A model generated the notes under the pieces. The model did not search any database. It was not told the DNA's origin and saw nothing but the letters and a program-made list of their open reading frames with translations. Source: Anthoceros angustus (Eukaryota; Plantae; Anthocerotophyta). Taken from it: a DNA stretch of 64,000 bases. Made by a program: the position numbers and the translations under genes. This document shows positions 28,932 to 56,200 of this stretch, one piece after another (position 1 is the first letter of the stretch; each line of letters begins with the position of its first letter). Location: NCBI GenBank assembly GCA_010909165.1, contig MU008154.1:682001-746000 (forward strand), written 5' to 3'.

Positions 28932-28963
<32 letters not shown>

Positions 28964-29634
28964 AAGTTAATTGTATTTAGAAAACTATGAAACTTCTTCA
29001 CCTCTAGGTATTGTATGTATACATGTTTAGTATAGTGATTATTTTTCACTAGCATAGTAAATAAAAATTATTTATTTAATTATTTATGTATGCTATTCTT
29101 TGCAACTTCACCCTTGTTGTGCCGGGCGCGACCTCTCTTAATTGGTGTTGAGCTTGATGCGCCTCAATCTTTTCTTGCGACAAGGCAGTTGTCCTAGTTT
29201 CTTCTTCTTTCAGCGGCCTTGCTATCTCTCGGGTAGCGGCCCTCACCTCCTTAGAGGAAGAAGACATGTTGATCACTTATTCAAGCAACTCTCTAACAAG
29301 GATCTGAGTGTAAAAGGGTGAACAACGTTATCACGCACCGTCTTTAATGGCTTTTGGGCTGCGTGGTCCATTAAGTGCCGTAAGAGTTTTAGGGCATAAC
29401 GCAGTAGAAACGAGGCACTCACGGTGAGAGTTGGCATTGGCATCGTGGGCGAAGGGGAGCTAGTAGTCGACTGTGAAATAAATCTCCAAATGATCAACAA
29501 GTGGGAGTGAAGAAGTATAGTGATTATTTTTCACTAGCATAGTAAATAAAAATTATTTATGTATGCTATTCTTTGCAACAACAAAGAAACATACAACCAT
29601 ATTACATACATATCGGCCCTTCTTGTTTCCACCT

Positions 29635-30562: not shown

Positions 30563-33500
30563 TATTGCTTGGATGTTTGTGCTCTATAATGTATTTAAAA
30601 TTGGTCAATATGGATTATTTTGTGAAAATATATTCAACCGTGGTGGTTGCTCAATATCCTAGGCAATTGTTAGGAGTTCTGAGGTGGAACCCATTGATGA
30701 GCATACGACCACTTATTGTTTGATAGATGTTCAATTTTATAGACCACTTATTGTTTGATAGATGTTCAATTTTATAGACCACTTATTGTTTGATAGATGT
30801 TCAATTTTATAGACCACTTATTGTTTAGATGTTCAATTTTTCACCACTTATTGTTTGATAGATGTTCAATTTCACCACTTATTGTTTGATAGATGTTCAA
30901 TTTTATAGACCACTTATTGTTTGATAGATGTTCAATTTTACGAGCACTTATTGTTTGATAGATGTTCAATTTTATACACCACTTATTGTTTGATAGATCG
31001 AGGTGGAGCGTGAGGATGAGCAACTTAACAAACCACTTCTTGTTAGGCTTTCCTAAGGTGCAACGTTGCGGTGGGCAACTCAACCAACCACTTAGATGAT
31101 GGCCTTTATAGATGACCTTGAATACTAGATACTATCAGGATATTTGATATTTCCTTTCTAGCATCTTCAAATTGTTTTTTCTTGTGATAGGTACTATAAA
31201 TGGATATTTGATATTTCCTTTATGCACGTTCAAGTTGTTTTTCTTGTACATACTATTAATGGATATATGATATTTCCTTTCCTGTTCTAATTGTTTTCTT
31301 GTGGTAGCGATATTATATTTATATTTGGTATTTCTTGTGGTATCTTTGAATTTCTTTCACTATTTATTGGTCCATCTTAGTAACAAAATGGCATGGTTGT
31401 GCAACTAATTAAGTCTCTCCTTGCCTTCTTAAATCACTTTGTTGAGGTTCCCAAGTCTTGACACACATACCTCTCCTTGCTACTTTTTGGGTACAATTAC
31501 GTGGGCTACCCACTCCGTAAGAGGGTAGATCACTTTGGCCTCCAAGTACTGGCCTAGCTAGTTCTTGACCACCATAGAATACTTGGGGTTTATCCTATAC
31601 TTTGATTCTTCAGGGATATTGCCTTCTTAATGTACAACATGTCAATTGAGAACTAAACTACACCAAATCTTGTAGGAATAGAAGTTGATGTGGGAAATAG
31701 TTACCACGTGATTAGACAAAGGCATTTGTTTGGTTCCTTGATGAACTTTGTGGCGTGAACTAAGCAATGTCATGCCTAACACTTCAGCCCAAATGTGGTA
31801 ACATGGTCATAGTTTTAACCTTATTAATGTTATGAATTGCGTGCTAAACTTACGTCAACTTAAGGCTGGCCTTGATTGCCACGAACCTTTATGTTGAAGC
31901 TCACGATGGCCTCCCAAAGCGCTTCTTACTAAGGGCTGTCCATGGCATTCAAACCTTCATCAAAAGGAGCCATTCAGATATCTAGTTTGGCACGAAATCT
32001 TTATCAAGGTGCCCAATATTGCAAGGTGCAAGCGGCAATTAGGAGACCCCAATACTTTAGTGTAGATGAGACCATCCAATTTGTACACCTTTGACATAAA
32101 GAACTACTCATCATATTATGATTTCAAGGACTATCAAACTACGTGAGGCGAAAACAAACCTAGACTTGTAGGATAAGAGGTTAGTCGTGAGAGACTTTGC
32201 GTTGTGGAATAGCGGGGTTTGACCTACTTTGGGCTTTTCTTGTGAATACATAAGCATTGGGATTCTCATCTTATCTCCATTTTCAAATTTCATGGCCAAA
32301 GCGGAAAAAAAAATTACTACAATAATATAAATTAAACCACTAGCACAACAAAATTAAGGCATAATAAAGCAAAAAAGAATAAAACATAAAACATAAAACA
32401 AAACAAAACCTCAAACAACAGTACAAAACAATAGAAGAACCTTGTGCATCTTTTGAATCTTTAGACATTTGGCTTGGGCTCGATATCGATCCCCGCCACC
32501 TCACGTGGTAACACTTTGCTCAGGCGGCGGTGCTGTGTCATTGAACGAGGTATGGTCTTATGACATTGTTGCACCATGGCTGCAAAGGAGTTCTCAATAG
32601 GCTAGAGGTCGATGTGGTGGTGCTCGAGCCTTCAGTGAAAGGATCTGTAGAGACCGCTGATTATGACTTTTCACTCCATGGATGATCGCCTCCAGTTATG
32701 AAGGCTAGGTCTATGTTACAGACGACTCGGTTATATATCACGATCTTACACCATTGCAATGGAAGATTAAGAAGGAGAAGTTACCTTGAGGAATTTTCGT
32801 CTTTTTAGTCACGCTTTTCTTTCATGGGGATGAATTTGTGGTGTTTAGCCCTGTTCATGCATTTCATTAACATTATTGATTGATTGAAGATTATTTGTCT
32901 TGTTTGAATTTTACCTTTGCATTCGTCTGACCATTTTACAATAATCTATGGTTGCCATATTTCAATCCTATAGATCAGTCCTTAGTGGACTTGAATAAAT
33001 TTCTTCTTCTTCCTCTTCATCTTCTTCATTTGTTCTTCTTCTTGTTCTTCTTTTCATCTTCTTCTCGCATCTTCTTCTTCTTCCATTATTAATTGTATTT
33101 AGAAAACTATGAAACTTCTTCACCTCTAGGTATTGTATGTATACATGTTTAGTATAGTGATTATTTTCACTAGCATAGTAAATAAAAATTATTTATTTAA
33201 TTATTTATGAAAGCACACACCGCTTCATGAATTGCAAGAAATGTCAAATATGGTATTCACCACTTGTTGAAAAGTAGTTACGCCAAAGGCTTTGAGTAAG
33301 CATAAGTGCCCCAACTCGTGAATGTGGTCTTGTCCTAATCCTCCTTCCTTAGCGAAATTTGATTGTAGCCCGAGTAACCATCGAAAGCTATACATCTCAT
33401 GTCCAACACACTTTCCATGAAAGGCAAGGGGTGGTGGTCCTTCTTCGTCACTTTGTTGAGGTTCCTGAAGTCTTGACACAGCCATACCTCTCCTTGCTAC

Positions 33501-36500
33501 TTTTTGGGTACAATTACGATCGGGGCTACCCACTCACTGGTAAGCAGAGGGTAGATCACTTTGGCCTCCAAGTACTGGCCTAGCTAGTTCTTGACCACCA
33601 TAGAATACTTGGGTTTATCCTATACTTCTTGATTCTTACTGGGATATTGCCTTCTTTCAAATCGATTCGATGTATCCCCAATTCTTCCAGGATTCCTGTC
33701 ATGTCAGTAATCTTGAAGGCAAACACATCGACATATTCAAATAGGGACTTAGTAATTAAAGGATGATTCGATAAATAGGTAAATAGGTAAGTAATAGATA
33801 GGTAACTTGGGGGGCGGGGAGGGGGTAAGGTTTTGAGATTAAGTCCAATAGAAATCTCGGGGGGTATGGGGGTGAGCTCTTCGGGTAGTGATCGAGCTTA
33901 CCGCGGACCCTCAGTTGAGGTGGTAGAAATAAAACCCAAGTTGGTGTACGCCTATCTACAATTAGAAGCTGTCGTAAAGGAGGATTCGGGAGATGAGGCG
34001 AATAGGGAAGGGGTAGCCTTCTGGAAAGGGAAAGCCTATGATCGGGATTTTCCCGATGAAGGATCAGGGAATAGTGTAAGTAGCAGTGTGGAGGGAACTT
34101 ACGTAGATCCAGATGCTATAGAGGATTTAGAGCTGGAACCCTGCAAGGTAGTCAAGATTGCTAGGTACTTAGGAGCAATAGAGAAGGAGGAATTCCATAA
34201 ACTGCTTCTATTTATCTAGCTCATTGGAGTCGGGCGTATATAGCTGATTTATCTATTTTCTCGAGGATTTTTCCCTTTCTTTGGTTGTACCCCGTGGGGT
34301 AGGCTGATACCTACAATGGTAGGTAGGATGCCTACGGTGGTAGGCTAGCGATCTATCATGGTAGGTCCTCGAGCAACTCATAATTATTGCTTGGTCGCGA
34401 GGAATTCATTATTGCTTGGATGGGAGAGCTAGAAATGGTTGTGTGGAGTGTTGTTGTCGTAGCCAGCGGCATGGATGGCTAGCATTCGCTTCTACTACTC
34501 GTAAATAAAGAGTACCATCTCGTCTAAGGTGGCTCATGAGTTGTCAAGGGCGGCTGCTTGGACCTAACACTTCAGCCCAAATGTGGTTTTGTTATGACAC
34601 CACAAAAGCCACGGACGGTATTTCCTAACACGAAACATCGACAAGGACTTACAACATTAACTCTGGGACCCGGGAAAAAGCAGATTTCGGTTCACTCATC
34701 CCGAGTTCAATCCATCGTCATCACTTGGTCCGACTTCTCCTCCATTGTCATCACTATCTTGATGACACTTCACTCGCAGTTGTATGAAGCCAACTCATGA
34801 GCTTATCCCTTATCGCTTTTTGTCCACCATACAGATGTTTTCGTTCAACACAAACCCATGTCTAGGATGGTTTCATTCACAAATACCTCACTGTATGTTT
34901 TTAGGTAATGGATCTTATTCCCTTTTTCCTCGGCATTGGACGGATGGGTTACCACTCTGGCGGACTATGTGTTCTGCACATATCTCCTTCATACGCATCT
35001 ATGTGCTCGGTCCGATACTAGTGGATAAGAAAGTGAGGTCGTGGTGCGTTTAGCTTCACGTCAATGACCTCCCAATCCGAATGGCTATTATGCATGTCCG
35101 TATTGCGCAGCCTTTGAAACATCCCTCTCGGTTCCGTTATGTCCCCATTCATCCGTGCCATTTCCGGTTGCCTTCCGCATTTTGATATGCCCCAATACAT
35201 ATCACGTGGGAGGTCCCTCAATAATGCCTCATCTAGCAAAGCTTCATCCGCACTTGAAGTGGTCATGATCCACTTACGTGAAAACCACTTCCAAGGGCTA
35301 GCACTAGCCCAATGTTATTCTCCACAATGATAGCAATCTCCTTCCGGTCCAAGGCTTCCCACCACTTATACTCTTGATCCTATGGATGCAATCTTTTAAC
35401 CCTTCACCATACACCTTCCATCGGTGATAGGATACTGCCGTTCCTTCTTGTCCCCCCTAGCTTCACCCCGTATGCACCGTAGGATGGTGCTAAGGGCGAT
35501 CGGGCGCCCTCCCCCATCTGCTCATGGGCGGCCGTGGCGCCCTCCCTAACACCGCCCATGGGCGGCCCGGGCCTCCCAACACACCTACCCATGGCGCGGC
35601 CGGCCGCCTAACACGCCACCGCCCATGGCGCCGGGGCGCCTCCCCTAACACCACCCATGGGCGGCCGGCGGCGTCCTCCCCTAACACACCACCCATGGGC
35701 GCCGCGCCTCCCCTAGCACTGCCCATGGGCGTGCGCAACATGCCGTCCTTGGGCGGCCGGCCAGCGCCCCCCAACACGCCATGCCTTGGGCGGCCGGCCT
35801 CCCTAACACCTGCCTACCCATGGGCGCCGGCCCCTCCTCATGTCTTCCAAAATAAATATTTAGCGCCTCAAGAGTAATTCAACCATGGACTGTTGGTCTA
35901 GTGTTTGGGAAATAAGTGTAGGAATAGGTTTCGTGTTCAAACCTCGTGCCTCCTCAAAGTTCAATTTTGTTGATTTTAAGGATGCTTGCATGGGCGCATG
36001 GGCAACTAACTTTGTTCATTTTAAGGACGTTGGCATTGCCTTAAAGCCCAAGTGGTTGCATTGAGTGCGGAAGGTTGAAGACCACGGTGGCGACCTTTTG
36101 GATGAGGGTCGTGGACCCCTAGATCTTGTGTGGCGATCGACACCGTCGGGGGGCCCAAGAATGATACTATTGAAGGCGAGCAAGCAATGGAGGAGAGCGA
36201 CAACGAGGCGGAGGATATGGACCGCCTCCGAATATGGCGGTGGTACTTGACTCGGTTTGGCGCAAGGCATGGATGAGTCGCCGGGCCGCACTCTTGAATG
36301 GCTATTGTCGATCTTGATGACCACTTCCTCCTTAGCGATTGTTGTTGCAATGTTCTCACGACCACTTAAATGAGACTCCGCTTAAGATTGTTTTCATTGT
36401 GTTCCACCACTTGAAAGTAAAAGTTTTCGGTTGTAATAAAACATATGAAAATGGCAGCCCTCTATGCATTCTACTAAAGCATAAGCGGGCCCACCCTCAT

Positions 36501-38309
36501 GCTCCGGTTCTCGGTGTAGACTTGAAGTGCATCTTTTATCAAAGATATGACCTCGGAAAGGTGTGTGCATTATCAAAGTAGGGCACATATCTTTGTTCTA
36601 GGTAAGGTGTTCTTAAGTGACAAGGGGTCTTTGTCTCTCGGCGAGGGGGTCGATATCCCCCCTTCAAAATTCGTGTTGTTGCTTCCACATCACAATCATA
36701 GTTACTGCGCGAGGGTGTCATTCATATGATGTGTCATTCATATGATATTTTGTTTCTTGAAGAAGAAGAAGAAGACTAGAAAGGTACAGAAAGAAGGCAA
36801 CTATACACCTAGTTTCTATGCAACTTTTATAATTTAACTCATTCTTGAGTGTCTCTTTGTCCTAGTTTCTTCCGCACGATGTTGGTAGGATTCTACAACG
36901 TTTCTTGCATATTTCCACTCTGCCAGTAAAGGTATAGCTTTACAACCATCTTGCAGGCAACTTCCCAGTTTTTCTGAGAACCCGAACATCGCTCCTGAAT
37001 ATTATTCTAGGCATCAAGACTTTGTTTTCGTTTCACATTGATCCGGTACACTGTTCACCATGAGGTTTCACAAAGCAGCCTATAAGAGGAAGCGATTGAG
37101 CATAGAATGCAATAGACACTGCTAGAATATTCGGCCTTGAACTAGATTATGGTCACATATTTAAATTTCTATTGTGCATTTCATTCAGAAGTAGCCTTGC
37201 AGGCCTCTCGTTACAACAAGTGGGCCCGTAAGGCTTTTCATAGTAGCGGGCCCCGTAGGACTTTTTACAACAAGTGGCCCCGTAGGGCCTTTTACAATAG
37301 GCGGACCCATAGGGCTTTGGCTTGGGCCCAGCTCCAAGTGCACACCATACCACTTTCGTTCTCGCATTGCAGGCGAATCAAGAAGAGCATCAGGTCAAGG
37401 ACGATATTATTGTGCCAAATGTCTAAGAAACAAAGTCTTAGGATTCCGGGCGAGTATAGTCTTAGGATTGGTAGTACAGTGAAAGGTTGATGCAAAACAA
37501 GTTTGCACACCAAAATCACAAGCCCTAAACACTCTAAATGTTTGTACACGCGGATTGTGAGAATGACCTTCTTTAGGAAGGCTCAAAATTGGATAAAAAT
37601 TGAAAATCAAATGCGTTTGTGCACACGTAAACAAGACCTAAACTATTCAAAATGGTCTTTTTAGTGCGGATTTTTAGCATGCAATTTGGGGTTTATGGCA
37701 AGTGCAAAAGGTTTCGGAGAAACCCTTTCTACCCGACGCTATTCTGGTAGAAACCCATGGGAGTTAATGATATCGATCCCCTTGCTCCTTCTTGTCACTG
37801 GTAACACAATATCAGCGGACGATTCGCCGTGCATTGAACTTGAGAATTTATGGTCTTGGTAATGACATTGTTGCACCACTTGTGGCTGCAAAGGAGTTTC
37901 TCAATAGGCTAGAGGTCGATGTGGTCGCTGCTCGAGCCGCTTGGAAAGGATGGTAGAGACCGCATATTGATTATGACTTTTCACTCCATGGATGATCGCC
38001 TCCAGTTATGAAGGCTAGGTCTATGTTACAGACTAGGTTATATATCAATCGATCTTACACCATTGCAATGGAAGATTAAGAAGGAGAAGTTACCGCCGAG
38101 CTGCTGCAAGTCAACGGCTTTCTTTCATGGGGATGAATTTGTGGTGTTTAGCCCTCGCTCATGCATTTCATTAACATTATTGATTGATTGAAGATTATTT
38201 GTCTTGTTTGAATTTTACCTTTGCATTCGTCTAGACCATTTTACCGCAATCTATGTAGTTGCCATATTTCAATCCTATGAAAGATCCGTCCTTAGTGGAC
38301 TTGAATAAA

Positions 38310-38387
38310 TTTCTTCTTCTTCTTCTTCATCTTCTTCTTCTTGTTCTTCTTGTTCTTCTTCTCTTCTTCTTCTTCCTCTTCTTCTTG

Positions 38388-38432
<45 letters not shown>

Positions 38433-38471
38433 ATCTTCTTCTTCTCTTCTTCTTCTTCCTCTTCTTCTTCT
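38310..38471. repeat. (CTT)n microsatellite; also at 28822-28960, 33001-33082, 42506-42653, 46638-46786, 47121-47180 and (GAA)n at 51715-51850
   Basis: Directly visible. Confidence 0.97.
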
Positions 38472-38675
38472 TACAGTTATTAATTGTATTTAGAAAACTA
38501 TGAAACTTCTTCACCTCTAGGTATTGTATGTATACATGTTTAGTATAGTGATTATTTTTCACTAGCATAGTAAATAAAAATTATTTATTTAATTATTTAT
38601 GTATGCTATTCTTTGCAACAACAAAGAAACATACAACCATATTACATACATATCAGGCCCTTCTTGTTTCCACCT

Positions 38676-39770
38676 TTAAATTTGCATACTAAATTGTGCT
38701 AACATGAAGTCTTGCGATATGCAATCTCGCATCACTTGACCATGGTACACATCTAGCTCCGCATCCAAGACCTCTGCACTTTTGACTATGGCGGGTGGTT
38801 GGCTACCTCCTCTTCCTATAACATGTGCCGCCACACTCCCATTTGGGGGTCGTTGGTTTGCCGCTTGTATTATCATTCGCATATCAATTGCCTCAATGGT
38901 CATTGGTTTGCCATCAAGATCCAAGTGGTTGTTTGGCTTAGTGGTTCGGAGCTTTTGAGAGAACCACAATAAGTAGGGTTGCAACAAAGTCGTGGCTCAA
39001 GTATCACAAAGTTAGAGACTTCAACTTAAACCGTGAGACAAGATCAAACAACAAAATCCAAATGTAAAATTGAAGTTCAAAACCGCCCAATCATATATCG
39101 ACAAGCTAGGCACAAGTAACACTAAATATGCACAAGTTCCACTAAGTACTTAAGCATCTAACTGCACACCAAAGTGTGTAGTTACAAACCTTGGAGGTTA
39201 AGTAGGGTGCGATTCGTCTTGCTGCTTATCTAAGTCGTGTGTCAACACCTCCGAGCCCCGCCTCGAGAACCTCTCCTCTGCCAGATTCGTCCGCATTGGA
39301 TGACGAGCACCGCCACGCCTTGCTTTCTTTTATTGAGCTTGATCAAGTCATCAAGACTCAATTTGCCTTCCTTAGCGCAACGGTTCCATACATATGGTGA
39401 CCGCCACCGTGGTCCTTTGCCTTAAGCTTGATCAAGTCATGCTTATTCTTTTATTGAGCTTGATCAAGTCATCAAGACTCAATTTGCCTTCCTTAGCAGC
39501 AGCGGTTTCATGTGGTGACCGCCACCGTGGTCCTTTGCCTTAAGCTTGATCAAGTCATGCTTATTCTTTTATTGAGCTTGATCAAGTCATCAAGACTCAA
39601 TTGTTAGCCATGCATGTGGTGACCGCCACCGTGGTCCTTTGCCTTAAGCTTGATCAAGTCATCCACATTCTTTTATTGAGCTTGATCAAGTCATCAAGAC
39701 TTAGATGACCACAACGTTGTCTTAGGTCCTCGAGCAACTCATAATTATTGCTTGGTCGCGAGGAATTCAT
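38676..39770 (-). CDS. ALY/REF-derived gene, copy B (four N-terminal UBM repeats, 2 exons)
   Basis: SLDDLIKLNK x4; exon 2 LDLDGKPMTIEAI...KSAEVLDAELDVYH. Confidence 0.75.
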
Positions 39771-39915
39771 TATTGCTTGGATGTTTGTGCTCTATAATGT
39801 ATTTAAAATTGGTCAATATGGATTATTTTTGTGAAAATATATTCAACCGTGGTGGTTGCTCTCAATATCCTAGGCAAATCAATTGTTAACCGTTGCAAGG
39901 ATGAGCAATTTTACC

Positions 39916-40220
39916 GACCACTTATTGTTTGATAGATGTTCAATTTTATAGACCACTTATTGTTTGATAGATGTTCAATTTTATAGACCACTTATTGTTT
40001 GATAGATGTTCAATTTTATAGACCACTTATTGTTTGATAGATGTTCAATTTTATAGACCACTTATTGTTTGATAGATGTTCAATTTTATAGACCACTTAT
40101 TGTTTGATAGATGTTCAATTTTATAGACCACTTATTGTTTGATAGATGTTCAATTTTACCGAGCACTTATTGTTTGATAGATGTTCAATTTTATACACCA
40201 CTTATTGTTTGATAGATGTT
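39916..40220. repeat. 35-bp minisatellite (gaccacttattgtttgatagatgttcaattttata)n; also at 30707-30998, 44011-44373, 48516-48821 and inverted at 50018-50392
   Basis: About 9-11 head-to-tail units per array, no spacers. Confidence 0.95.
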
Positions 40221-42623
40221 CCTGAGGTGGAACGTAGCGAGGATGAGCAACTTAACAAACCACTTCTTGTTAGGCTTTCCTAAGGTGCAACGTTGCGAAG
40301 GTGGGCAACTCAACCAACCACTTAGATGATGGCTCCTTTATAGATGACCTTGAATACTAGATACTATACAGGGATATTTGATATTTCCTTTCTAGCATCT
40401 TCAAATTGTTTTTTCTTGTGATAGGTACTATAAATGGATATTTGATATTTCCTTTATGGCACGTTCAAGTTGTTTTTCTTGTAATACATACTATTAATGG
40501 ATATATGATATTTCCTTTCCAAAGATGTTCTAATTGTTTTTCTTGTGGTAGCGATATTATATTTATATTTGGTATTTTCTTTTGTGGTATCTTTGAATTT
40601 CTTTCACGCTCGTATTGGTCCATCTTAGTAACAAAATGGCATGGTTGTGCAACTTAATAATTAAGTCTCCTCACTTGCCTTCTTAATGTACAACATGTCA
40701 ATTGGAGAACTAAACTACACCAAATGTAGGAATAGAAGTTGATGTGGAATAGTTACCACACGTGATTAGACAAAGGCATTTGTTTCGTTCCTTGATGAAC
40801 TTTGTGACGTGAACTAAGCAATGTCATGCCTAACACTTCAGCCCAAATGTGGTAACATGGTCATAGTTTTAACCTTATTAATGTTATGAATTGCGCTAAA
40901 CTTACGTCAACTTAAGGCTGGCCTTGATTGCCACGAACCTTTATGTTGAAGCTCACGATGGCCTCCCAAAGCTTCTTACTAAGGGCTGTCCATGGCATTC
41001 AAACCTTCATCAAAAGGAGCCATTCAGATATCTAGTTTGTGACCGAAATCTTTATCAAGGTGCCCAATATTGCAAGGCAAGCGGCAATTAGGAGACCCCA
41101 ATACTTTAGTGTAGATGAGACCATCCAATTTGTACACTTTACATAAAGAACTACTCATCATATTATGATTTCAAGGATGATTTCAAGGACTATCAAACAA
41201 AACAAAACAAAACCTAGACTTGTAGGATAAGAGGTTAGTCGAGAGACTTTGCGTTGTGGAATAGCAGGTTTGACCTACTTTGGGCTTTTCTTGTGAATAC
41301 ATAAGCATTGGGATTCTCATCTTATCTCCATTTTCAAATTTCATGGCCAAACGGAAAAAACATTACTACAATAATATAAATTAAACCACTAGCACAACAA
41401 AATTAAGGCATAATAAAGCAAAAAAGAATAAAACATAAAACATAAAACAAAACAAAACCTCAAACAACGGCAAAACAATAGAGAGAACCTTGTGCATCTT
41501 TTGAATCTTTAGACATTTGGCTTGGGCTCCAAGTGCACACCATACCACTTATTGTTTTTCTTGTGAATCAAGAAGAGCATCGGTCAAGGAAGATATTATT
41601 GTGCCAAATGTCTAAGAAACAAAGTCTTGTAGGATTCCAAAAAAGAGTATAGTCTTAGGATTGGTGATGCAGTGAAAGGTTGATAAAACAAGTTTGCACA
41701 CCAAAATCACAGCAAGCCCTAAACACTCTAAATGTTTGTACGTCGGATTGTGAGAATGACCTTCTTTAGGAAGGCTCAAAATTGGATAAAAATTGAAAAT
41801 CATGCGTTGTGCACACGTAAACAAGACCTAAACTATTCAAAATGGTCTTTTTAGTGCGGATTTTTAGCATGCAATTTGGGGTTTGCGCCTCCGTGTGCAA
41901 AATTCGAGAAACCCCTACCCACGACGTAGAAACCCATGGAGTTAATGATATCGATCCCCGCTCCTTCTTGTCCCGGTGGTAACACAATATCGGCGAAGGT
42001 TCGCCGTGCATTGAACTTGAGAATTTATGGTCTTGGTAATGACATTGTTGCACCACTTGTGGCTGCAAAGGAGTTTCTCAATAGGCTAGAGGTCGATGTG
42101 GTTTGCCATCAAGATCCAAGTGGTTGTTTGGCTTGGAAAGGATCTTTGGTAGAGACCGCATATTGATTATGACTTTTCACTCCATGGATGATCGCCTCCA
42201 GTTATGAAGGCTAGGTCTATGTTACGACCTTTTATATATCAATACCGATCTTACACCATTGCAATGGAAGATTAAGAAGGTTACACCTTTTCATCGTCTG
42301 CAAGTCAACGGCTTTTCTTTCATGGGGATGAATTTGTGGTGTTTAGCCCTCGTTCATGCATTTCATTAACATTATTGATTGATTGAAGATTATTTGTCTT
42401 GTTTGAATTTTACCTTTGCATTCGTCTAGACCATTTTACCGCAATCTATGTAGTTGCCATATTTCAATCCTATGAAAGATCCGTCCTTAGTGGACTTGAA
42501 TAAATTTCTTCTTCTCTTCATCTTCTTCTTCTTGTTGTTCTTGTTGTTGTTGTTCTTCTTCTTCTTCCTCTTCATCTTCTTGTTCTTCTTCTTCCTTCTT
42601 CTTCTTCTTCTTCTTCTTCTTCA

Positions 42624-42654
<31 letters not shown>

Positions 42655-42856
42655 ACAGTTATTAATTGTATTTAGAAAACTATGAAACTTCTTCACCTCT
42701 AGGTATTGTATGTATACATGTTTAGTATAGTGATTATTTTTCACTAGCATAGTAAATAAAAATTATTTATTTAATTATTTATGTATGCTATTCTTTGCAA
42801 CAACAAAGAAACATACAACCATATTACATACATATCAGCCCTTCTTGTTTCCACCT

Positions 42857-43867
42857 TTAAATTTGCATACTAAATTGTGCTAACATGAAGTCTTGCGATA
42901 TGCAATCTCGCATCACTTGACCATGGTACACATCTAGCTCCGCATCCAAGACCTCTGCACTTTTGACTATGGCAGGAGGTCGTTGGCTACCTCCTCTTCC
43001 TATAACATGTGCCGCCACACTCCCATTTGGGGGTCGTTGGTTTGCCGCTTGTATTATCATTCGCATATCAATTGCCTCAATGGTCATTGGTTTGCCATCA
43101 AGATCCAAGTGGTTGTTTGGCTTAGTGGTTCGACGAGCTTTCTGCAGTAAGAGAACCACAATAACCGTTAGGGTTGCAACAAAGTCAGGGCTCAAGTATC
43201 ACAAAGTTAGAGACTTCAACTTAAACTGTGAGACAAGATCAAACAACAAAATCCAAATGTAAAAATTGAAGTTCAAAACCGCCCAATCATATATCGACAA
43301 GCTAGGGCACAAGTAACACTAAATATGCACAAGTTCCACTAAGTACTTAAGCATCTAACCTGGCACACCAAAGTGTGTAGTTACAAACCTTGGAGGTTAA
43401 GTAGGGTGCATTCGTCTTGCTACACGGTTATCTCAGAAGTCGTGTCAACACCTCCGAGCCCCGAGAACCTCTCGTCCTGGCAACAATTGCGTCCGCATTG
43501 GATGACGAGCACCGCCACGCCTTGCTTTCTTTTATTGAGCTTGATCAAGTCATCAAGACTCAATTGCCTTCCTTAGCGCAACGGTTCCATACATATGGTG
43601 ACCGCCACCGTGGTCCTTTGCCTTAAGCTTGATCAAGTCATGCTTATTCTTTTATTGAGCTTGATCAAGTCATCAAGACTCAATTGCCTTCCTTAGCAGC
43701 GGTTTCATGCATGTGGTGACCGCCACCGTGGTCCTTTGCCTTAAGCTTGATCAAGTCATCCACATTCTTTTATTGAGCTTGATCAAGTCATCAAGACTTA
43801 GATGACCACAACGTTGTCTTAGGTCCTCGAGCAACTCATAATTATTGCTTGGTCGCGAGGAATTCAT
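42857..43867 (-). CDS. ALY/REF-derived gene, copy C (exon 1 43867-43389, GT-AG intron 43388-43142, exon 2 43141-42857)
   Basis: N-UBM SLDDLIKLNK x3 in a ~120-bp repeat, RRGG, PYLTSK|KARR phase-0 splice, last RRM strand LDGKPMTIEAI, C-UBM SAEVLDAELDVYH. Exon 1 has small indels in this assembly. Confidence 0.8.
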
Positions 43868-46800
43868 TATTGCTTGGATGTTTGTGCTCTATAATGTATT
43901 TAAAATTGGTCAATATGGATTATTTTTGTGAAAATATATTCAACCGTGGTGGTTGCTCTCAATATCCTAGGCAAATCAATTGTTAACCGTTGCAAGGATG
44001 AGCAATTTTACCACTTATTGTTTGATAGATGTTCAATTTTACCGACCACTTATTGTTTGATAGATGTTCAATTTTATAGACCACTTATTGTTTGATAGAT
44101 GTTCAATTTTATGGACCACTTATTGTTTGATAGATGTTCAATTTTATAGACCACTTATTGTTTGATAGATGTTCAATTTTATGACCACTTATTGTTTGAT
44201 AGATGTTCAATTTTACCACTTATTGTTTGATAGATGTTCAATTTTACCACTTATTGTTTGATAGATGTTCAATTTTATACACCACTTATTGTTTGATAGA
44301 TGTTCAATTTTACGAGCACTTATTGTTTGATAGATGTTCAATTTTATACACCACTTATTGTTTGATAGATGTTCACGAGGTGGAGCGTGGCGAGGATGAG
44401 CAACTTAACAAACCACTTCTTGTTAGGCTTTCCTAAGGTGCAACGCGTTGAAGGTGGGCAACTCAACCAACCACTTAGATGATGGCTCCTTTATAGATGA
44501 CCTTGAATACTAGATACTATACAGGATATTTGATATTTCCTTTCTAGCATCTTCAAATTGTTTTCTTGTGATAGGTACTATAAATGGATATTTGATATTT
44601 CCTTTATGGCACGTTCAAGTTGTTTTCTTGTAATACATACTATTAATGGATATATGATATTTCCTTTCCAAAGATGTTCTAATTGTTTTCTTGTGGTAGC
44701 GATATTATATTTATATTTGGTATTTTCTTTTGTGGTATCTTTGAATTTCTTTCACGCTCGTATTGGTCCATCTTAGTAACAAAATGGCATGGTTGTGCAA
44801 CTTAATAATTAAGTCTCCTCACCTTGCCTTCTTAATGTACAACATGTCAATTGGAGAACTAAACTACACCAAATCTTTGTAGGAATAGAAGTTGATGTGG
44901 GAAATAGTTACCACACGTGATTAGACAAAGGCATTTGTTTCGTTCCTTGATGAACTTTGTGACGTGAACTAAGCAATGTCATGCCTAACACTTCAGCCCA
45001 AATGTGGTAACATGGTCATAGTTTTAACCTTATTAATGTTATGAATTGCGTGCTAAACTTACGTCAACTTAAGGCTGGCCTTGATTGCCACGAACCTTTA
45101 TGTTGAAGCTCACGATGGCCTCCCAAAACTGCTTCTTACTAAGGGCTGTCCATGGCATTCAAACCTTCATCAAAAGGAGCCATTCGTATATCTAGTTTGC
45201 GCACGAAATCTTTATCAAGGTGCCCAATATTGCAAGGCAAGCGGCAATTAGGAGACCCCAATACTTTAGTGTAGATGAGACCATCCAATTTGTACACTTT
45301 ACATAAAGAACTACTCATCATATTATGATTTCAAGGATGATTTCAAGGACTATCAAACTACGTGAGCGGAAAAACAAACCTAGACTTGTAGGATAAGAGG
45401 TTAGTCGAGAGAGACTTTGCGTTGTGGAATAGGTGGTTTGACCTACTTTGGGCTTTTCTTGTGAATACATAAGCATTGGGATTCTCATCTTATCTCCATT
45501 TTCAAATTTCATGGCCAAACGGAAAAAACATTACTACAATAATATAAATTAAACCACTAGCACAACAAAATTAAGGCATAATAAAGCAAAAAGAATAAAA
45601 CATAAAACATAAAACAAAACAAACCTCAAACAACGGCAAAACAATAGAGAGAACCTTGTGCATCTTTTGAATCTTTAGACATTTGGCTTGGGCTCCAAGT
45701 GCACACCATACCACTTTGTTGTTCTTCTTCTTGTGAATCAAGAAGAGCATCGGTCAAGGAAGATATTATTGTGCCAAATGTCTAAGAAACAAAGTCTTGT
45801 AGGATTAGCGAGTATAGTCTTAGGATTGAACAGTGAAAGGTTGATAAAACAAGTTTGCACACCAAAATCACAGAAGCCCTAAACACTCTAAATGTTTGTA
45901 CAGGCATTGTGAGAATGACCTTCTTTAGGAAGGCTCAAAATTGGATAAAAATTGAAAATCAAAACACGTAAACAAGACCTAAACTATTCAAAATGGTCTT
46001 TTTAGTGCGGATTTTTAGCATGCAATTTGGGGTTTCGCAAGTTATGAAGTTCTGGAGAAACCCTTTCTACCCAGACGTAGAAACCCATGGGAGTTAATGA
46101 TATCGATCCCCGCTCCTTCTTGTCCCGGTGGTAACACAATATCGGAGATTGCTTACATTATTGAGAATTTATGGTCTTGGTAATGACATTGTTGCACCAC
46201 TTGTGGCTGCAAAGGAGTTTCTCAATAGGCTAGAGGTCGATGTGGTCGTTGCTCGAGCCTTGGCTTGGAAAGGATGGTAGAGACCGCATATTGATTATGA
46301 CTTTTCACTCCATGGATGATCGCCTCCAGTTATGAAGGCTAGGTCTATGTTACGACGACTCTTATATATCAATCGATCTTACACCATTGCAATGGAAGAT
46401 TAAGAAGGAGAAGTTACTTTCGAGTCTGCTGCAAGTCAACGGCTTTCTTTCATGGGGATGAATTTGTGGTGTTTAGCCCTCGTTCATGCATTTCATTAAC
46501 ATTATTGATTGATTGAAGATTATTTGTCTTGTTTGAATTTTACCTTTGCATTCGTCTAGACCATTTTACCGCAATCTATGTAGTTGCCATATTTCAATCC
46601 TATGACGAAGATCCGTCCTTAGTGGACTTGAATAAATTTCTTCTTCCTCTTCATCTTCTTCATTTGTTGTTGTTGTTGTTGTTCTTCTTCTTCTTCCTCT
46701 TCATCTTCTTGTTCTTCTTCTTCCTTCTTCTTCTTCTTCTTCTTCTTCTCTCTTCTTCTTCTTCTTCTTCTTCATCTTCTTCTTCTTACAGTTATTAATT

Positions 46801-47144
46801 GTATTTAGAAAACTATGAAACTTCTTCACCTCTAGGTATTGTATGTATACATGTTTAGTATAGTGATTATTTTTCACTAGCATAGTAAATAAAAATTATT
46901 TATTTAATTATTTATGTATGCTATTCTTTGCAACAACAAAGAAACATACAACCATATTACATACATATCAGGCCCTTCTTGTTTCCACCTTTAAATTTGC
47001 ATACTAAATTGTGCTAACATGAAGTCTTGCGATATGCAATCTCGCATCACTTGACCATGGTACACATCTAGCTCCGCATCCAAGACCTCTGCACTTTTGA
47101 CTATGGCGGAGGTGGCTACCTCCTCTTCTTCTTCTTCTTCTTCA

Positions 47145-47179
<35 letters not shown>

Positions 47180-47384
47180 TTACAGTTATTAATTGTATTT
47201 AGAAAACTATGAAACTTCTTCACCTCTAGGTATTGTATGTATACATGTTTAGTATAGTGATTATTTTTCACTAGCATAGTAAATAAAAATTATTTATTTA
47301 ATTATTTATGTATGCTATTCTTTGCAACAACAAAGAAACATACAACCATATTACATACATATCAGGCCCTTCTTGTTTCCACCT

Positions 47385-48371
47385 TTAAATTTGCATACTA
47401 AATTGTGCTAACATGAAGTCTTGCGATATGCAATCTCGCATCACTTGACCATGGTACACATCTAGCTCCGCATCCAAGACCTCTGCACTTTTGACTATGG
47501 CGGAGGTGGCTACCTCCTCTTCCTATAACATGTGCCGCCACACTCCCATTTGGGGTCGTTGGTTTGCCGCTTGTATTATCATTCGCATATCAATTGCCTC
47601 AATGGTCATTGGTTTGCCATCAAGATCAAGTGGTTGTTTGGCTTAGTGGTTCGAGCTTTCGCAGAAGAGAACCACAATAAGTAGGGTTGCAACAAAGTCG
47701 GGCTCAAGTATCACAAAGTTAGAGACTTCAACTTAAACTGTGAGACAAGATCAAACAACAAAATCCAAATGTAAAATTGAAGTTCAAAACCGCCCAATCA
47801 TATATCGACAAGCTAGGCACAAGTAACACTAAATATGCACAAGTTCCACTAAGTACTTAAGCATCTAACTGCACACCAAAGTGTGTAGTTACAAACCTTG
47901 GAGGTTAAGTAGGGTGCGATTCGTCTTGCTACGGTTATCAGTCGTGTGTCAACACCTCCGAGCCCCGCCGAGAACCTCTCGTCCTTGGCAGCGATTCGTC
48001 CGCATTGGATGACGAGCACCGCCACGCCTTGCTTTCTTTTATTGAGCTTGATCAAGTCATCAAGACTCAATTGCCTTCCTTAGCGCAACGGTTCCATACA
48101 TATGGTGACCGCCACCGTGGTCCTTTGCCTTAAGCTTGATCAAGTCATGCTTATTCTTTTATTGAGCTTGATCAAGTCATCAAGACTCAATTGCCTTCCT
48201 TAGCGGTTTCATGCATGTGGTGACCGCCACCGTGGTCCTTTGCCTTAAGCTTGATCAAGTCATCCACATTCTTTTATTGAGCTTGATCAAGTCATCAAGA
48301 CTTAGATGACCACAACGTTGTCTTAGGTCCTCGAGCAACTCATAATTATTGCTTGGTCGCGAGGAATTCAT
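47385..48371 (-). CDS. ALY/REF-derived gene, copy D (extra 3' fragment at ~46991-47120)
   Basis: SLDDLIKLNKRK x3, RRIAPYLTSK, exon 2 as in copy C. Confidence 0.75.
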
Positions 48372-50545
48372 TATTGCTTGGATGTTTGTGCTCTATAATG
48401 TATTTAAAATTGGTCAATATGGATTATTTTTGTGAAAATATATTCAACCGTGGTGGTTGCTCTCAATATCCTAGGCAAATCAATTGTTAACCGTTGCAAG
48501 GATGAGCAATTTTACCGACCACTTATTGTTTGATAGATGTTCAATTTTATAGACCACTTATTGTTTGATAGATGTTCAATTTTATAGACCACTTATTGTT
48601 TGATAGATGTTCAATTTTATAGACCACTTATTGTTTGATAGATGTTCAATTTTACTGACCACTTATTGTTTGATAGATGTTCAATTTTACCGAGCACTTA
48701 TTGTTTGATAGATGTTCAATTTTATAGACCACTTATTGTTTGATAGATGTTCAATTTTACCGAGCACTTATTGTTTGATAGATGTTCAATTTTATACACC
48801 ACTTATTGTTTGATAGATGTTCCTGAGGTGGAACGTAGCGAGGATGAGCAACTTAACAAACCACTTCTTGTTAGGCTTTCCTAAGGTGCAACGCGTTGAA
48901 GGTGGGCAACTCAACCAACCACTTAGATGATGGCTCCTTTATAGATGACCTTGAATACTAGATACTATACAGGATATTTGATATTTCCTTTCTAGCATCT
49001 TCAAATTGTTTTTCTTGTGATAGGTACTATAAATGGATATTTGATATTTCCTTTATGGCACGTTCAAGTTGTTTTTCTTGTAATACATACTATTAATGGA
49101 TATATGATATTTCCTTTCCAAAGATGTTCTAATTGTTTTCTTGTGGTAGCGATATTATATTTATATTTGGTATTTTCTTTTGTGGTATCTTTGAATTTCT
49201 TTCACGCTCGTATTGGTCCATCTTAGTAACAAAATGGCATGGTTGTGCAACTTAATAATTAAGTCTCCTCACCTTGCCTTCTTAATGTACAACATGTCAA
49301 TTGAGAACTAAACTACACCAAATGCTGTAGGAATAGAAGTTGATGTGGGAAATAGTTACCACACGTGATTAGACAAAGGCATTTGTTTCGTTCCTTGATG
49401 AACTTTGTGACGTGAACTAAGCAATGTCATGCCTAACACTTCAGCCCAAATGTGGTAACATGGTCATAGTTTTAACCTTATTAATGTTATGAATTGCGTG
49501 CTAAACTTACGTCAACTTAAGGCTGGCCTTGATTGCCACGAACCTTTTATGTTGAAGCTCACGATGGCCTCCCAAAACTGCTTCTTACTAAGGGCTGTCC
49601 ATGGCATTCAAACCTTCATCAAAAGGAGCCATTCGTATATCTAGTTTCGCGGCACCGAAATCTTTATCAAGGTGCCCAATATTGCAAGGCGCAAGCGGCA
49701 ATTAGGAGACCCCAATACTTTAGTGTAGATGAGACCATCCAATTTGTACACTTTACATAAAGAACTACTCATCATATTATGATTTCAAGGACTGAAGGAA
49801 ATATCAAATATCCATTTATAGTACCTATCACAAGAAAAAACAATTTGAAGATGCTAGAAAGGAAATATCAAATATCCCTGTATAGTATCTAGTATTCAAG
49901 GTCATCTATAAAGGAGCCATCATCTAAGTGGTTGGTTGAGTTGCCCACCTTAGTTGCACCTTAGGAAAGCCTAACAAGAAGTGGTTTGTTAAGTTGCTCA
50001 TCCTCGCTCCACCTCGTGAACATCTATCAAACAATAAGTGGTGTATAAAATTGAACATCTATCAAACAATAAGTGGTGTATAAAATTGAACATCTATCAA
50101 ACAATAAGTGCTCGTAAAATTGAACATCTATCAAACAATAAGTGGTCTATAAAATTGAACATCTATCAAACAATAAGTGGTCTATAAAATTGAACATCTA
50201 TCAAACAATAAGTGGTCTATAAAATTGAACATCTATCAAACAATAAGTGGTCTATAAAATTGAACATCTATCAAACAATAAGTGGTCATAAAATTGAACA
50301 TCTATCAAACAATAAGTGGTCTATAAAATTGAACATCTATCAAACAATAAGTGCTCGTAAAATTGAACATCTATCAAACAATAAGTGGTCGGTAAAATTG
50401 CTCATCGCAAGGTTCCACCGAGAACTCCTAACAATTGATTGCCTAGGATATTGAGAGCAACCACCACGGTTGAATATATTTTCACAAAAATAATCCATAT
50501 TGACCAATTTTAAATACATTATAGAGCACAAACATCCAAGCAATA

Positions 50546-51512
50546 ATGAATTCCTCGCGACCAAGCAATAATTATGAGTTGCTCGAGGACCTAAGACAAC
50601 GTTGTGGTCATCTAAGTCTTGACTTGATCAAGCTCAATAAAAGAATGTGGATGACTTGATCAAGCTTAAGGCAAAGGCCACGGTCACCACATGCAAACCG
50701 CTGCTAAGGAAGGCAAATTGAGTCTTGATGACTTGATCAAGCTCAATAAAAGAATAAGCATGACTTGATCAAGCTTAAGGCAAAGGACCACGGTGGCGGT
50801 CACCATATGTATGGAACCGTTGCCGCTAAGGCAAATTGAGTCTTGATGACTTGATCAAGCTCAATAAAAGAAAGCAAGGCGTGGCGGTGCTCGTCATCCA
50901 ATGCGGGGAAGCTGTTGCCAAGGCGAGAGGTTCTCGAGGCTCGGAGGTGTTGACACACGACTTACGAGATAAGTAGCAAGACAGCGCACCCTACTTAACC
51001 TCCAAGGTTTGTAACTACACACTTTGGTGTGTGTTAGATGCTTAAGTACTTAGTGGAACTTGTGCATATTTAGTGTTACTTGTGCCCTAGCTTGTCGATA
51101 TATGATTGCGGTTTTGAACTTCAATTTTACATTTGATTTTTGTTGTGATCTTGTCTCACAGTTTAAGTTGAAGTCTCTAACTTTGTGATACTTGAGCCCC
51201 GACTTTGTTGCAACCCTAACGGATTGTGGTTCTCTTCGCGGTAAAGCTCGAACCACTAAGCCAAACAACCACTTGGATCTTGATGGCAAACCAATGACCA
51301 TTGAGGCAATTGATATGCGAATGATAATACAAGCAAAACCAACGACCCCAAATGGGAGTGTGACATGTTATAGGAAGAGGAGGTAGCCGACCTCCGCCAT
51401 AGTCAAAAGTGCAGAGGTCTTGGATGCGGAGCTAGATGTGTACCATGGTCAAGTGATGCGAGATTGCATATCGCAAGACTTCATGTTAGCACAATTTAGT
51501 ATGCAAATTTAA
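50546..51512 (+). CDS. ALY/REF-derived gene, copy E (in the inverted arm); a further exon-2 fragment lies at ~52411-52645 on minus
   Basis: Reverse complement of copies B-D. Confidence 0.7.
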
Positions 51513-52649
51513 AGGTGGAAACAAGAAGGGCCCGATATGTATGTAATATGGTTGTATGTTTCTTTGTTGTTGCAAAGAATAGCATACATAAATAATTAAA
51601 TAAATAATTTTATTTACTATGCTAGTGAAAAATAATCACTATACTAAACATGTATACATACAATACCTAGAGGTGAAGAAGTTTCATAGTTTTCTAAATA
51701 CAATTAATAACTGTAAGAAGGAAGAAGAAGAAGAAGAAGAAGATGATGAAGAAGAAGAAGAAGAAGAGGAGGAGGAAGAAGAAGAACAAGAAGATGAAGA
51801 GGAAGAAGAAGAAGAAGAACAACAACAACAACAACAAGATGAAGAAGAAACTTGTTCAAGTCCACTAAAGACGGATCTTCGTCATAGGATTGAAATATGG
51901 CAACTACATAGATTGCGGTAAAATGGTCTAGACGAATGCAAAGGTAAAATTCAAACAAGACAAATAATCTTCAATCAATCAATAATGTTAATGAAATGCA
52001 TGAGAGGGCTAAACACCACAAATTCATCCCCATGAAAGAAAGCTTGACTTGCAAGAGCAGCTCAAAAGTGTAACTTCTCCTTCTTAATCTTCCATTGCAA
52101 TGGTGTAAGATTGATATATAACGAGTCGTAACATAGACCTAGCCTTCATAACTGGAGGCGATCATCCATGGAGTGAAAAGTCATAATCAATATGCGGTGC
52201 CGGCTCCTTTCGCAAGGCTCGAGCAAGCGTACATCGACCTCTAGCCTATTGAGAAACTCCTCCACAAGTGGTGCAACAATGTCATTACCAAGACCATAAA
52301 TTTCAAGTTCAATGCACGGCAGCACCGTCGCCTTCGATATTGTGTTACCACCGTGACAAGAAGGAGCAGGGGGATCGATATCATTAACTCCATGGGTTTC
52401 CACTTGCAGCCTAAATTGTGCTAACATGAAGTCTTGCGATGCAATCTGCATCACTTGACCATGGTACACATCTAGCTCGCATCCAAGACCTCCTTTGACT
52501 ATGGCGGAGGTGGTGGCTACCTCCTCTTCCTATAACATGTGCCGCCACACTCCCATTTGGGGGTCATTGGTTTGCCGCTTGTATTATCATTCGCATATCA
52601 ATTGCCTCAATGGTCATTGGTTTGCCATCAAGATCCAAGTGGTTGTGGA

Positions 52650-53228: not shown

Positions 53229-56200
53229 TGTGATTCGGACTTCTGGGGGTTAGAAATTAGGTAGGGCTTTGTTTTTTGTAGGAGTAAAGGATAAATGGCG
53301 GAAAAGGGAAATAAGCATGGGCACTCGGACGGCACTGGAGTATACTCCGGACTCCGGAGTGAGGAAGCGTACAGGGACCTACTATGGTAGGCGCCACGAT
53401 GCGGATAAGTCCGACCCACTCCAAGACCGAGGCGGGATAAATGCAGAAAATGCTGAGAGTTGGGCCGTGGGAGGCGGACCGGGCGCCGCCACGTGGGCAA
53501 CTCAGGTGGAAGCAGCATCTGTGGCGGGGAAGTAACCTTGCCGAGGCCGTTATGGCGGTATTCACGCCGCGGACCGCGCGGCACAGAAGACCGAGTACGC
53601 GCAAGGCTGAGGGCGCGGGACGTAATAAGCCGCGCACTGCGCGCTACGGATGTGTGGAAGAGGCGCCCGCCTGCCGTTACTCCCACGAGCGGGCGGGGAA
53701 GGTCACGCAGCCGAGACACCGCGATCTCGCCCGCACCGCTCGGGCGGTATCTCGTGGACACAGACGCTCGCTCACCGCTGAGGTCGGAGCACAACGCGAA
53801 GAAGGCGCAACGTGCTGCCAGCCCGGCTGCGCCATGCAACCAAGGGAGGAGAAGGCGATGGCACCCAAAAGCCCGCGAAGTTTGGGAGCCATGGAACCTT
53901 GTGGAGCGCAACATTGTGACCCGCGCTATCCGGACTTTGGGCCTGGCTCCGAGCGGGAGAATTGGTGCAGGAGTGGCATTTGGATGTGTTCCGGATAGTG
54001 CGGACATTTGTGTCTCTGGTCGGGAGTTCGCCCAAGATGCCGGGCGGTCAATAAGGAGGTGCGGTCCAAGAACCTCCGGAGGACCCAAGGCGATGGACCT
54101 TGAGGTCCCGAGGCGGCCTACAACCGCCCAAAGGAGGAAGAGGGGAGGGTGCCGAGCCCCTCAAGGCGGGGAAGATAGGGCCCGGCCACAGCGATGCTAA
54201 GGCTCGACGCAACGACCACCAACGGTTGGTCGATATCCGACTGTTGGACGGTCGAGTAAGGGCGGTGGCGGATCATTGTCCATCGAACCTACTCACCAAG
54301 GTGGATCACCTTGGTGATAATCTGATAGTATTCACCTTGCGGCCGGGAAGAAGGCGGTGAGGAAGGATTATCTTCGCCGGTTTAGCGAGGCTTAGCTCGG
54401 CCGAAGCCTTAGCCATCAATACGATCCATGTATGGGGGCATTTCGAGCTCCTCAAGGAAGGAGAGCTTGAGCGAGCCCGAAAGGACCGAGGCCCCGCCAA
54501 GTGGAGGGCAAGGGCGCCGAGGGGAGGAGGCCGTCAAAGCCAAACGGACTCGGAGGAGGACGATCGAGGATTCCTGACTCCATACGTCTGAACGGACCCC
54601 TCACCACCTGTGGAAGTATGGAAGAAATTCCCCGCCTCCCTCCTTCCGTGCCCCAACCAGCAGCCCAGAAGCGGCCCCGACCCCAGCAGCCGCCACGGCC
54701 ATCACTCCTACCGAGGAGCCCCACGACTGTGAGGGAGCCAAGAGACGCAAGACCACGGCTGGCGGCACCCGGTCGGTGCAGTTTCCCCCTTGCAGGTGAG
54801 GCGGAGGAAGCGGAGGACCCAAGGCGATGGACCTTGAGGTCCCGAGGCGGAGGACAGCGCAGCCACGAGCAGTCACATCGCCCGGCGGAAGGGCAAAAGG
54901 CTTGCTCCCGACTCTCACCTCCTCCGAGCCCTGTGGAGGAAAAGGGCGAGAAGGAGCTCGCGCCAAAAGGGCCAAGGAGGAAGCTCGGGCTCGGCCTCGG
55001 GGACCTAAGGGTCCCGATTAGGTCCGAGAACCCACCGACTTACTCAGGGTATGGAGGTCCTTGCGGACCGTGAGATCACGGCTCCACTACGGACTTTGTG
55101 GGAGCCTCACGTGACGTGGAAGAAACAGGGTCAGCTACCGTCATGGGCGGTATGCTCACAGTCTGCGGGATGGCCGAGAAGACCTGGAGGTAGAAGCCAC
55201 CCGCATGGTACTCCTCCGAGGCGGTTGGAGGAGCCCAGAGGCGAGAAGGAAGGCCAAGCCTCGGCCGATTGAGGAAGGCGGAGGCGAGAGGGAGGTCCGT
55301 CCATCCGCAAGGACCGGACCAAATTCCATTGGAGGAGCCCAGAGGCGAGAAGGAAGGCCAAGGAGGCGGAGGACCTCTGCAGGCGGAGGCGGAGGCGAGA
55401 AGGAGCTCGCGCCAAAAGGGCCAAGGAGGCGGAGGCGGAGGCGGCCGAGAGCCACGCCAATCAAGGCCGAGCAAGTGGAGGCTCGGTGAAGGTGGCCAAG
55501 GAGGCGGAGGCCACGGCCGATCGCGATCACTATCGGCGTGATCGGGCCGGTGGAGGGAGGCGGCCGAGAGCCACGCCAATCAAGGCCGAGCAGTGGCAAG
55601 AAGCGGAGGAAGAAGAAGGAGGAGGAGGCCGGAAATCGGGGACCTCGGTGCAGTGCAGAGGTAGAAGGGAGGCGGCAGGAGTTGGAGGACAGTAAGGACA
55701 CCTTGGAATTACAACTCCAAGATGCGTCGGAGCAGCAAGGAATTCTCAATGGGAGAATCCAGGACTTCGAGCAGGAGATAGAGCGCCTCCAGCTCTGCCT
55801 GAAGATGGAGCAGGAGGTGGCGGAGCAAGCGCGGACCAACCAGGCCCAAGAAGCTCGCCACAAGGAGGTAGAGGATCTCCGGACTCAGCTCCGGGAGGTG
55901 GAGCAGCAGCGGCAGGAGATGGAGGACCGCAAGGAGACTTTGGAGCTGCAGCTCCAAACTATCATTGAGAGGAATGGTAGTCTGCAGGACATGGTCGCGG
56001 AGCAGGCGAAATAAAGCTCCATTGGCGCGGAGTCGGAGGCGATGGAGCAGGGGAGGCGTCGAGATGGAAAAGGGCACAGGTGAAGCCCGCGATCAGCGTG
56101 TTGCCGCTCGGAGGCGGGAGATGGCGGAGTTAACGGGAATGGACAAGGAGGCGGAGGAGGACAAGAAGCTGCGGTCGGTGAGGAAGTCGGAAGGGGAGCA

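Follow-up and report, generated by a model that had tools for sequence, protein, structure and literature searches.

The window analysed here, a 64,000-nt stretch of the Anthoceros angustus assembly (contig MU008154.1), carries at 42857-43867 on its minus strand what is, to judge from its motifs and sequence matches, a remnant of a plant ALY/REF (THO complex subunit 4) mRNA-export gene with a broken reading frame. It is one of five relic copies, termed A to E, and is copy C of the series; by self-comparison, copy C extends over 42840-43900 on the same strand. Its parts are given below, with the means by which they were located in brackets.

42857..43867, minus strand: ALY/REF-derived relic, copy C (landmarks, BLASTP, ALY profile)
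43751..43867, minus strand: the only open reading frame (ORF) from the ATG (43867), 38 codons with one UBM-like motif, closed by a TGA at 43751-43753
43527..43798, minus strand: internal tandem repeat of 118-120 nt, 2.3 units (TRF)
43769-43792, 43651-43674 and 43531-43554, minus strand: full UBM-like cores (pattern positions)
43739-43758 and 43621-43640, minus strand: half UBM copies (pattern positions)
43389..43526, minus strand: RGG-like stretch and APY..K, the end of former exon 1, with scrambled frame; the most variable segment between copies
43142..43388, minus strand: AT-rich spacer of 247 nt derived from ALY introns (Genlisea ALY exon map, DNA alignment)
42857..43141, minus strand: exon-2-like ORF, 94 codons plus stop (BLASTP, phmmer, Pfam)
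43085-43099, minus strand: LDGKPM RRM tail in exon 2, which also contains GRGG
42923-42949, minus strand: C-terminal UBM-like motif in exon 2

The N- and C-terminal peptides of REF are its two UAP56-binding motifs (UBMs; PMC2828547), and copy C presents its landmarks in the order typical of ALY: an N-terminal UBM, an RGG stretch, APY..K followed by a GT donor, the LDGKPM tail of the RRM and a C-terminal UBM. Common to all five copies, and again in ALY order, are the RGG stretch, APY..K with an invariant GT, LDGKPM..IEAI, GRGG and SAEVLDAELDVYH. The earlier note on this DNA had remarked that all landmarks are present in order, which is borne out for every copy, but they do not lie in one reading frame. 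When a profile made from 120 plant ALYs was run on the stop-free pieces of each copy, sense-strand pieces of all five copies gave 4-5 matches per copy at i-E <0.01, and neither the antisense pieces nor 20 shuffles gave a single match at this threshold. The profile positions matched in every copy were, in this order, 13-27 (3-4 times, plus weaker half copies), 155-203 and 225-258.

The most extended resemblance resides in exon 2, whose 94-codon frame in copy C holds LDLDGKPMTIEAI, GRGG and SAEVLDAELDVYH ahead of the stop. In a BLASTP comparison with the 120 plant ALYs, the best match was Ginkgo P0025 (37% identity over 100 residues, E 4e-12), followed by fern and lycophyte ALYs; identity to ALYs was 33-37%, and the match to ALY C-termini was significant. 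The ALY search by BLASTP and Pfam that the earlier note had proposed was thus positive in its BLASTP part (E 4e-12), but the Pfam family FoP_duplication (PF13865) stayed under its 24.6-bit cut-off, with E 0.0043 and 18.1 bits. A phmmer search of exon 2 against 1.84 billion cluster representatives returned three matches at E <=0.001, the sole ALY among them being P0003 (Diphasiastrum; E 7e-4) and the two stronger ones being unrelated repeat proteins; a closer relative of exon 2, of any length, was not found among these representatives. No predicted protein of 52-165 aa resembling exon 2 was found either, a blank that is weakly informative given this size range, and a sequence search of exon 2 against the PDB gave chance-level matches only (ALYREF chain 7znk_L at E 5.7). 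Of the upstream part, the 38-codon ORF shares 8/13 residues with the N-terminus of plant ALY; neither this ORF nor the last UBM ORF was assigned to a Pfam family. The descent of the relic from ALY follows from the exon-2 matches, from the ordered profile matches that lack any counterpart in the controls, and from the donor position and the 3' end of the spacer described below. That copies B and C keep exon 2 open for 94 codons, despite an identity to ALYs of 33-37%, suggests in addition that the sequence went through a coding phase in the past. The proposal of a tandemly amplified, ALY-derived sequence was well founded in this regard, with five copies whose profile and BLASTP matches lie above those of the controls.

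Equally well founded was the remark that nearly all of the RRM is missing. The RRM core (profile positions 66-155) found no match anywhere in 22000-53200 on either strand, Pfam RRM_1 (PF00076) did not match, and the RRM tail (positions 155-203) was the only part of the domain recovered; the relic therefore looks like an ALY copy minus the RRM-core exons. For the exon-intron structure, intron positions were taken from a distant Genlisea ALY gene (L001). The GT donor at 43387-43388 coincides with the conserved position of ALY intron 1 and is invariant across copies; exon 1 of the Genlisea gene ends in ..APYAAPFAAPK, to which ..APYLTSK followed by GT is the equivalent in the relic. At its other side, the 3' end of the spacer aligns in DNA comparison with the end of the intron that lies ahead of the GTAEVVF exon in the Genlisea gene. 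The region that corresponds to exon 2 of the relic is divided by an intron in Genlisea. A GT-AG intron at 43388-43142 had been postulated previously. Its donor stands up to comparison, but its AG acceptor at 43142 is not conserved, the acceptor region being different in every copy; the proposed CAG falls within what were the T-A-E codons of the parental exon, the original acceptor having been deleted. The layout fits a genomic ALY copy that lost its RRM-core exons and of which exon 1, remnants of introns and the exons encoding RRM tail and C-terminus are left.

We then come to the question of what the relic might encode. Each copy contains 3 full UBM-like cores (4 in copy B) and 2-3 half copies. 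The frame that starts at the ATG comprises 38 codons in B, C and D, 37 in E and fewer in A, where a 7-bp deletion intervenes; it includes one UBM-like motif of the LSLDDLIKLNK type, and all five copies have its stop context, once each. A full UBM copy and the half copy after it are offset by 32 nt at 11/11 junctions, which creates an in-frame TGA at each of them. Being 32 nt apart, full and half copies are mutually out of frame. The sequence of the full-to-half junctions is AT-rich at all 11 and does not differ from copy to copy. The 40-aa repeat unit described in the earlier note dissolves at this point, as the internal unit is one of 118-120 nt with a 32-nt offset and a TGA at all 11 junctions; the multiplication of the N-terminal UBM (3-4 times, plus half copies) is real at the DNA level, but the motifs are out of frame with each other. 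Read as proposed, exon 1 of copy C requires at least 6 frame switches in three-frame translation, and the majority-rule consensus of the five copies still requires at least 7. Exon 2 is open in only two of the five copies (B and C). An uninterrupted coding sequence across the exons, which were examined apart, is absent from all five copies as well as from the majority consensus. In copy A, a single frame runs from the ATG of the last repeat unit through the last UBM, the RGG stretch and APY..K as far as the donor. The consensus protein presented for the five copies is consequently encoded by none of them; because the majority consensus needs at least 7 frame switches, it is to be regarded as a best-of composite assembled from favourable variants.

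The relic copies are embedded in a macrosatellite array, the units and elements of which are as follows.

28283-32481: macrosatellite unit A
29618-30580, minus strand: relic copy A, with a 7-bp deletion after the ATG and a frameshifted exon 2
37750-41929: macrosatellite unit B
38660-39800, minus strand: relic copy B, with 4 full UBM-like cores, exon 2 open and exon 1 broken
41930-46079, no strand assigned: macrosatellite unit C, ~4.15 kb, which contains copy C (self-BLAST, TRF)
46080-49795: macrosatellite unit D
47368-48400, minus strand: relic copy D, with exon 2 frameshifted and the C-terminal motif doubled
49796-52400: macrosatellite unit E, inverted
50520-51530, plus strand: relic copy E, in the inverted unit, with exons 1 and 2 frameshifted
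52404..52646, minus strand: isolated exon-2 fragment with a CGA>TGA nonsense change
34362..34422, minus strand: 61-bp fragment of the relic 5' end, including the ATG
42506-42654: (TTC)n tract in unit C (TRF)
44010-44375: 35-bp minisatellite in unit C (TRF)
44511-44730: 62-bp repeats in unit C (TRF)
39906-40221, 48507-48822, 50017-50400 and 30707-30998: 35-bp minisatellite in the other units
9660-17463 and 61959-62627: Copia/Gypsy retrotransposon ORFs

According to self-BLAST, units A to D are direct and unit E is inverted, with a period of ~4.15 kb and identities of 89-97%. Units B to D abut head to tail; between units A and B lies 33206-37868, a repeat of 22564-28039, so that the array contains a higher-order repeat. 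This segment of ~5 kb, found on both sides of unit A (higher-order period ~10.6 kb), carries 27-32-bp GC-rich minisatellites. The orientation of the array switches at 49795/49796 and again at ~52400, after which the direct exon-2 fragment follows at 52404-52646; as the break points of the inversion differ in unit coordinates, the arrangement is not a perfect palindrome. Within unit D, an internal tandem duplication of 394 bp (46729-47522, 99% identical, no indels) doubles the (TTC)n-proximal part together with the C-terminal motif of the relic. The 35-bp minisatellite is located ~150 nt upstream of each relic ATG, with 9-11 copies whose number differs by unit, and downstream of the relic, at 41766-42166 and equivalent places in each unit, there are overlapping ORFs of 76-100 codons, among them, downstream of copy C, a minus-strand ORF of 100 codons at 41766-42068. 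These ORFs take in a 44-bp duplicate of the LDGKPM region (42091-42134 in unit C), which each unit has. Pfam found no match for the plus-strand ORF 41936-42166 and no domain in the other ORFs of the unit that were scanned, including none of the transposase, RT or ORF1 type; Rfam gave no family over 28000-53000, and inverted repeats of >=25 nt were not present in 41800-46200. The array is flanked by Copia-type ORFs (RVT_2, gag, integrase) and a Gypsy-type integrase, which are split into several frames.

Sequencing runs add to this picture. In a public DNA run (X1), whose contigs total 98 Mb, 580 contigs fell on the 1,151-nt relic stretch, with word depths of 500-13,000. Going by this depth, which is uncalibrated against single-copy sequence, the relic is in all probability a very high-copy repeat. 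A second DNA run (X2) contained exon 2 at depth 3, and a possible RNA run of the same sample (a guess, with contigs only) had no match to the relic, the latter being weak evidence.

How much of the variation between copies is genuine deserves some consideration. In every repeated pair of the window, be it relic or other sequence, there are more gap openings than mismatches, with an overall ratio of about 2:1, and differences between repeats cluster in G+C/CpG-rich patches. The pairs 22564-23732 versus 33206-34370 and 53236-54058 versus 63172-64000 are dominated by indels, with, for example, 13 mismatches versus 27 gap openings. This spectrum looks like the indel-type consensus noise typical of a long-read assembly. 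As the assembly is noisy in indels, we have given no weight to copy-specific frameshifts, which may be errors, and frameshifts in any gene-like feature of the window should be viewed with caution. Within the relic, copies diverge most in the GC-rich, coding-like part and not in non-coding DNA: the RGG/APY segment (43389..43526) has 9 substitutions and 16 gap columns per 100 nt, an identity between copies of 82-90% versus 94-100% nearby and 94-97% in the intron, and, in X1, the lowest depth. Between B, C and D, on the other hand, not one difference occurs in many 100-nt bins of AT-rich non-coding DNA. Some of the indel variation between copies is nevertheless real, as deduced from the frameshifting indels that X1 contains in exon 2, at 35% of depth (position 43029) and 68% (42974); over the whole relic, indel variants in this run account for 10-88% of depth. 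At 43563 and 43683, most copies in X1 have an extra A, with which the half copy comes into frame with the next full UBM. The breaks shared by all copies, at the full-to-half junctions, are of another sort than the copy-specific ones: X1 revealed no well-supported or majority difference there at depths in the thousands. With respect to constraint, copies B, C and D have the 38-codon ORF in identical form, and copy E has it with a 3-nt in-frame deletion that removes one residue inside the UBM-like core. AT-rich non-coding DNA close by is no more variable, so that such conservation does not speak for selection. In exon 2, clean substitutions are too few for a dN/dS estimate, and most of the apparent ones fall into the misaligned acceptor region.

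Taking these findings together, we consider it quite probable that the relic is a non-functional ALY/REF remnant within the ~4.15-kb monomer of a macrosatellite, in a TE-rich land-plant genome. Part of exon 1, comprising the UBM and the start of the RGG stretch, has expanded as a 118-120-nt minisatellite, and this multiplication of the UBM may well have arisen by replication slippage, as with the 35-bp, 62-bp and TTC repeats of the same unit, rather than by selection for multivalent UAP56 binding. The whole unit would then have been amplified by unequal crossing-over or segmental duplication at a time when its DNA was presumably already non-coding, and the array, which carries an inversion, internal duplications, stray fragments and the higher-order repeat, later rearranged. 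The protein envisaged for the locus is in all likelihood not made. A decaying pseudogene array had been mentioned in the earlier note as a fallback, and it is this reading that the broken frames, the lack of coding constraint and the repeat nature of the sequence favour. For questions of gene function the locus thus carries little weight, and it should be masked as a repeat and not be annotated as an export factor. As an object, a gene relic within tandemly repeated DNA, it is of an ordinary kind, though its parent gene is unusual, and it provides a clear case of a host-gene remnant that founded, or was carried along in, a very high-copy plant macrosatellite. Our literature search for an ALY-derived satellite or plant macrosatellite found no relevant description. 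The array could serve as a cytogenetic marker, and it teaches the caution that composite 'consensus' proteins drawn from noisy repeat copies can mimic striking new genes.

Several other readings have to be weighed against a non-functional remnant. The one that drew attention to the locus, a multivalent UAP56 decoy or driver gene in which 3-4 N-terminal UBMs and the C-terminal UBM form one protein translated from the annotated ATG, has in its favour that the motifs are repeated and well preserved. It is nonetheless extremely improbable, bordering on negligible: the frame from this ATG ends after 38 codons in B, C and D, after 37 in E and still earlier in A, and the TGA lies in frame at 11/11 of the 32-nt junctions, where X1 has no majority difference. 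The same proposal is further undermined by the facts that no copy encodes the protein, that variation is highest in the coding-like part, that no RNA contig matched and that large collections contain no related predicted protein. A smaller product is conceivable if some copies encode a 'mini-ALY' protein of ~165 residues that is masked by assembly noise; it would start at the last-unit ATG and comprise one N-terminal UBM, the RGG stretch, the RRM tail and the C-terminal UBM, with the upstream units acting as a leader with short ORFs, and it could bind UAP56 without RRM-mediated RNA binding. In line with this idea are the frame shared by last-unit ATG, UBM, RGG and APY..K in copy A up to the conserved donor, the open exon 2 in B and C, the indel-dominated differences throughout the window that suggest consensus errors, and the extra A at 43563 and 43683, which in most X1 copies restores the frame from the half copy to the full UBM. 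We still judge such a protein unlikely. Both halves are never intact in the same copy of the window, and in this part the majority consensus fails as well; the frameshifting indels of exon 2 reach 35% and 68% of depth in X1; two upstream ORFs would hinder translation; and the sequence belongs to a very high-copy array with inversions and fragments, for which there was neither an RNA contig match nor a related predicted protein.

Micropeptides might be made from the 38-codon ORF and the similar ORFs of ~26 codons in later units, each binding UAP56 through its one UBM. That the 38-codon ORF does not differ between B, C and D and is nearly intact in E would agree with this, but the AT-rich non-coding DNA next to it is just as invariant, copy A is broken and no sign of expression was found, which makes such peptides highly improbable. 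Capture of ALY fragments by a transposon (Pack-MULE, CACTA, Helitron or LINE) that then spread by transposition appears very unlikely. Plant transposons commonly capture gene fragments, and a (TTC)n tract is situated at one edge of each unit; against this, the units abut head to tail without spacers, no terminal inverted repeats (>=25 nt) were found within the unit, and its scanned ORFs contain no transposase, RT or ORF1-type domain. The human D4Z4 macrosatellite consists of 3.3-kb units that each carry a DUX4 ORF, intact and expressible. A plant counterpart of D4Z4/DUX4, in which a subset of copies is intact and expressed as the ~165-residue protein or as single-UBM peptides, is in our estimation improbable. 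If it existed, its products could titrate UAP56 and so affect the mRNA export that depends on TREX; such an effect might be tissue- or chromosome-specific.

Returning to the non-functional remnant, its relationship to known systems can be described as follows. With the ALY/REF export adaptors (plant ALY1-4), it has in common the order of landmarks and the position of the intron-1 donor. It departs from them by the loss of the RRM core, the lack of a continuous ORF, N-terminal motif copies that are out of frame with each other, an identity of no more than 33-37% in exon 2 and its place in a high-copy tandem repeat. An architecture with UBM but without RRM is also that of the UBM-only adaptors, UIF/FYTTD1 of animals and UIEF1/2 of Arabidopsis. 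In UIF, the UBM is the only region homologous to REF (PMC2828547), and UIEF1 has been named together with UAP56 (PMC8421220). UIF and UIEF are, however, single-copy, with intact ORFs and tested binding, whereas the relic is ALY-descended, broken and amplified; an intact ORF of the UIF/UIEF type, with a UBM and no RRM, was not encountered here, intact UBM ORFs being at most 38 codons in length. The ALY array resembles D4Z4 in its kilobase units arranged head to tail, with gene-derived sequence in each, and differs from it in that D4Z4 has kept an intact ORF and the ORF of the ALY relic is broken in every copy seen. Intron remnants, an internal exon deletion, variable frameshifts and nonsense changes are features that the relic shares with unprocessed pseudogenes and gene fragments in plant heterochromatic repeats. 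It stands out from these by its unusually high copy number, and by a minisatellite that has expanded a recognisable protein-interaction motif.
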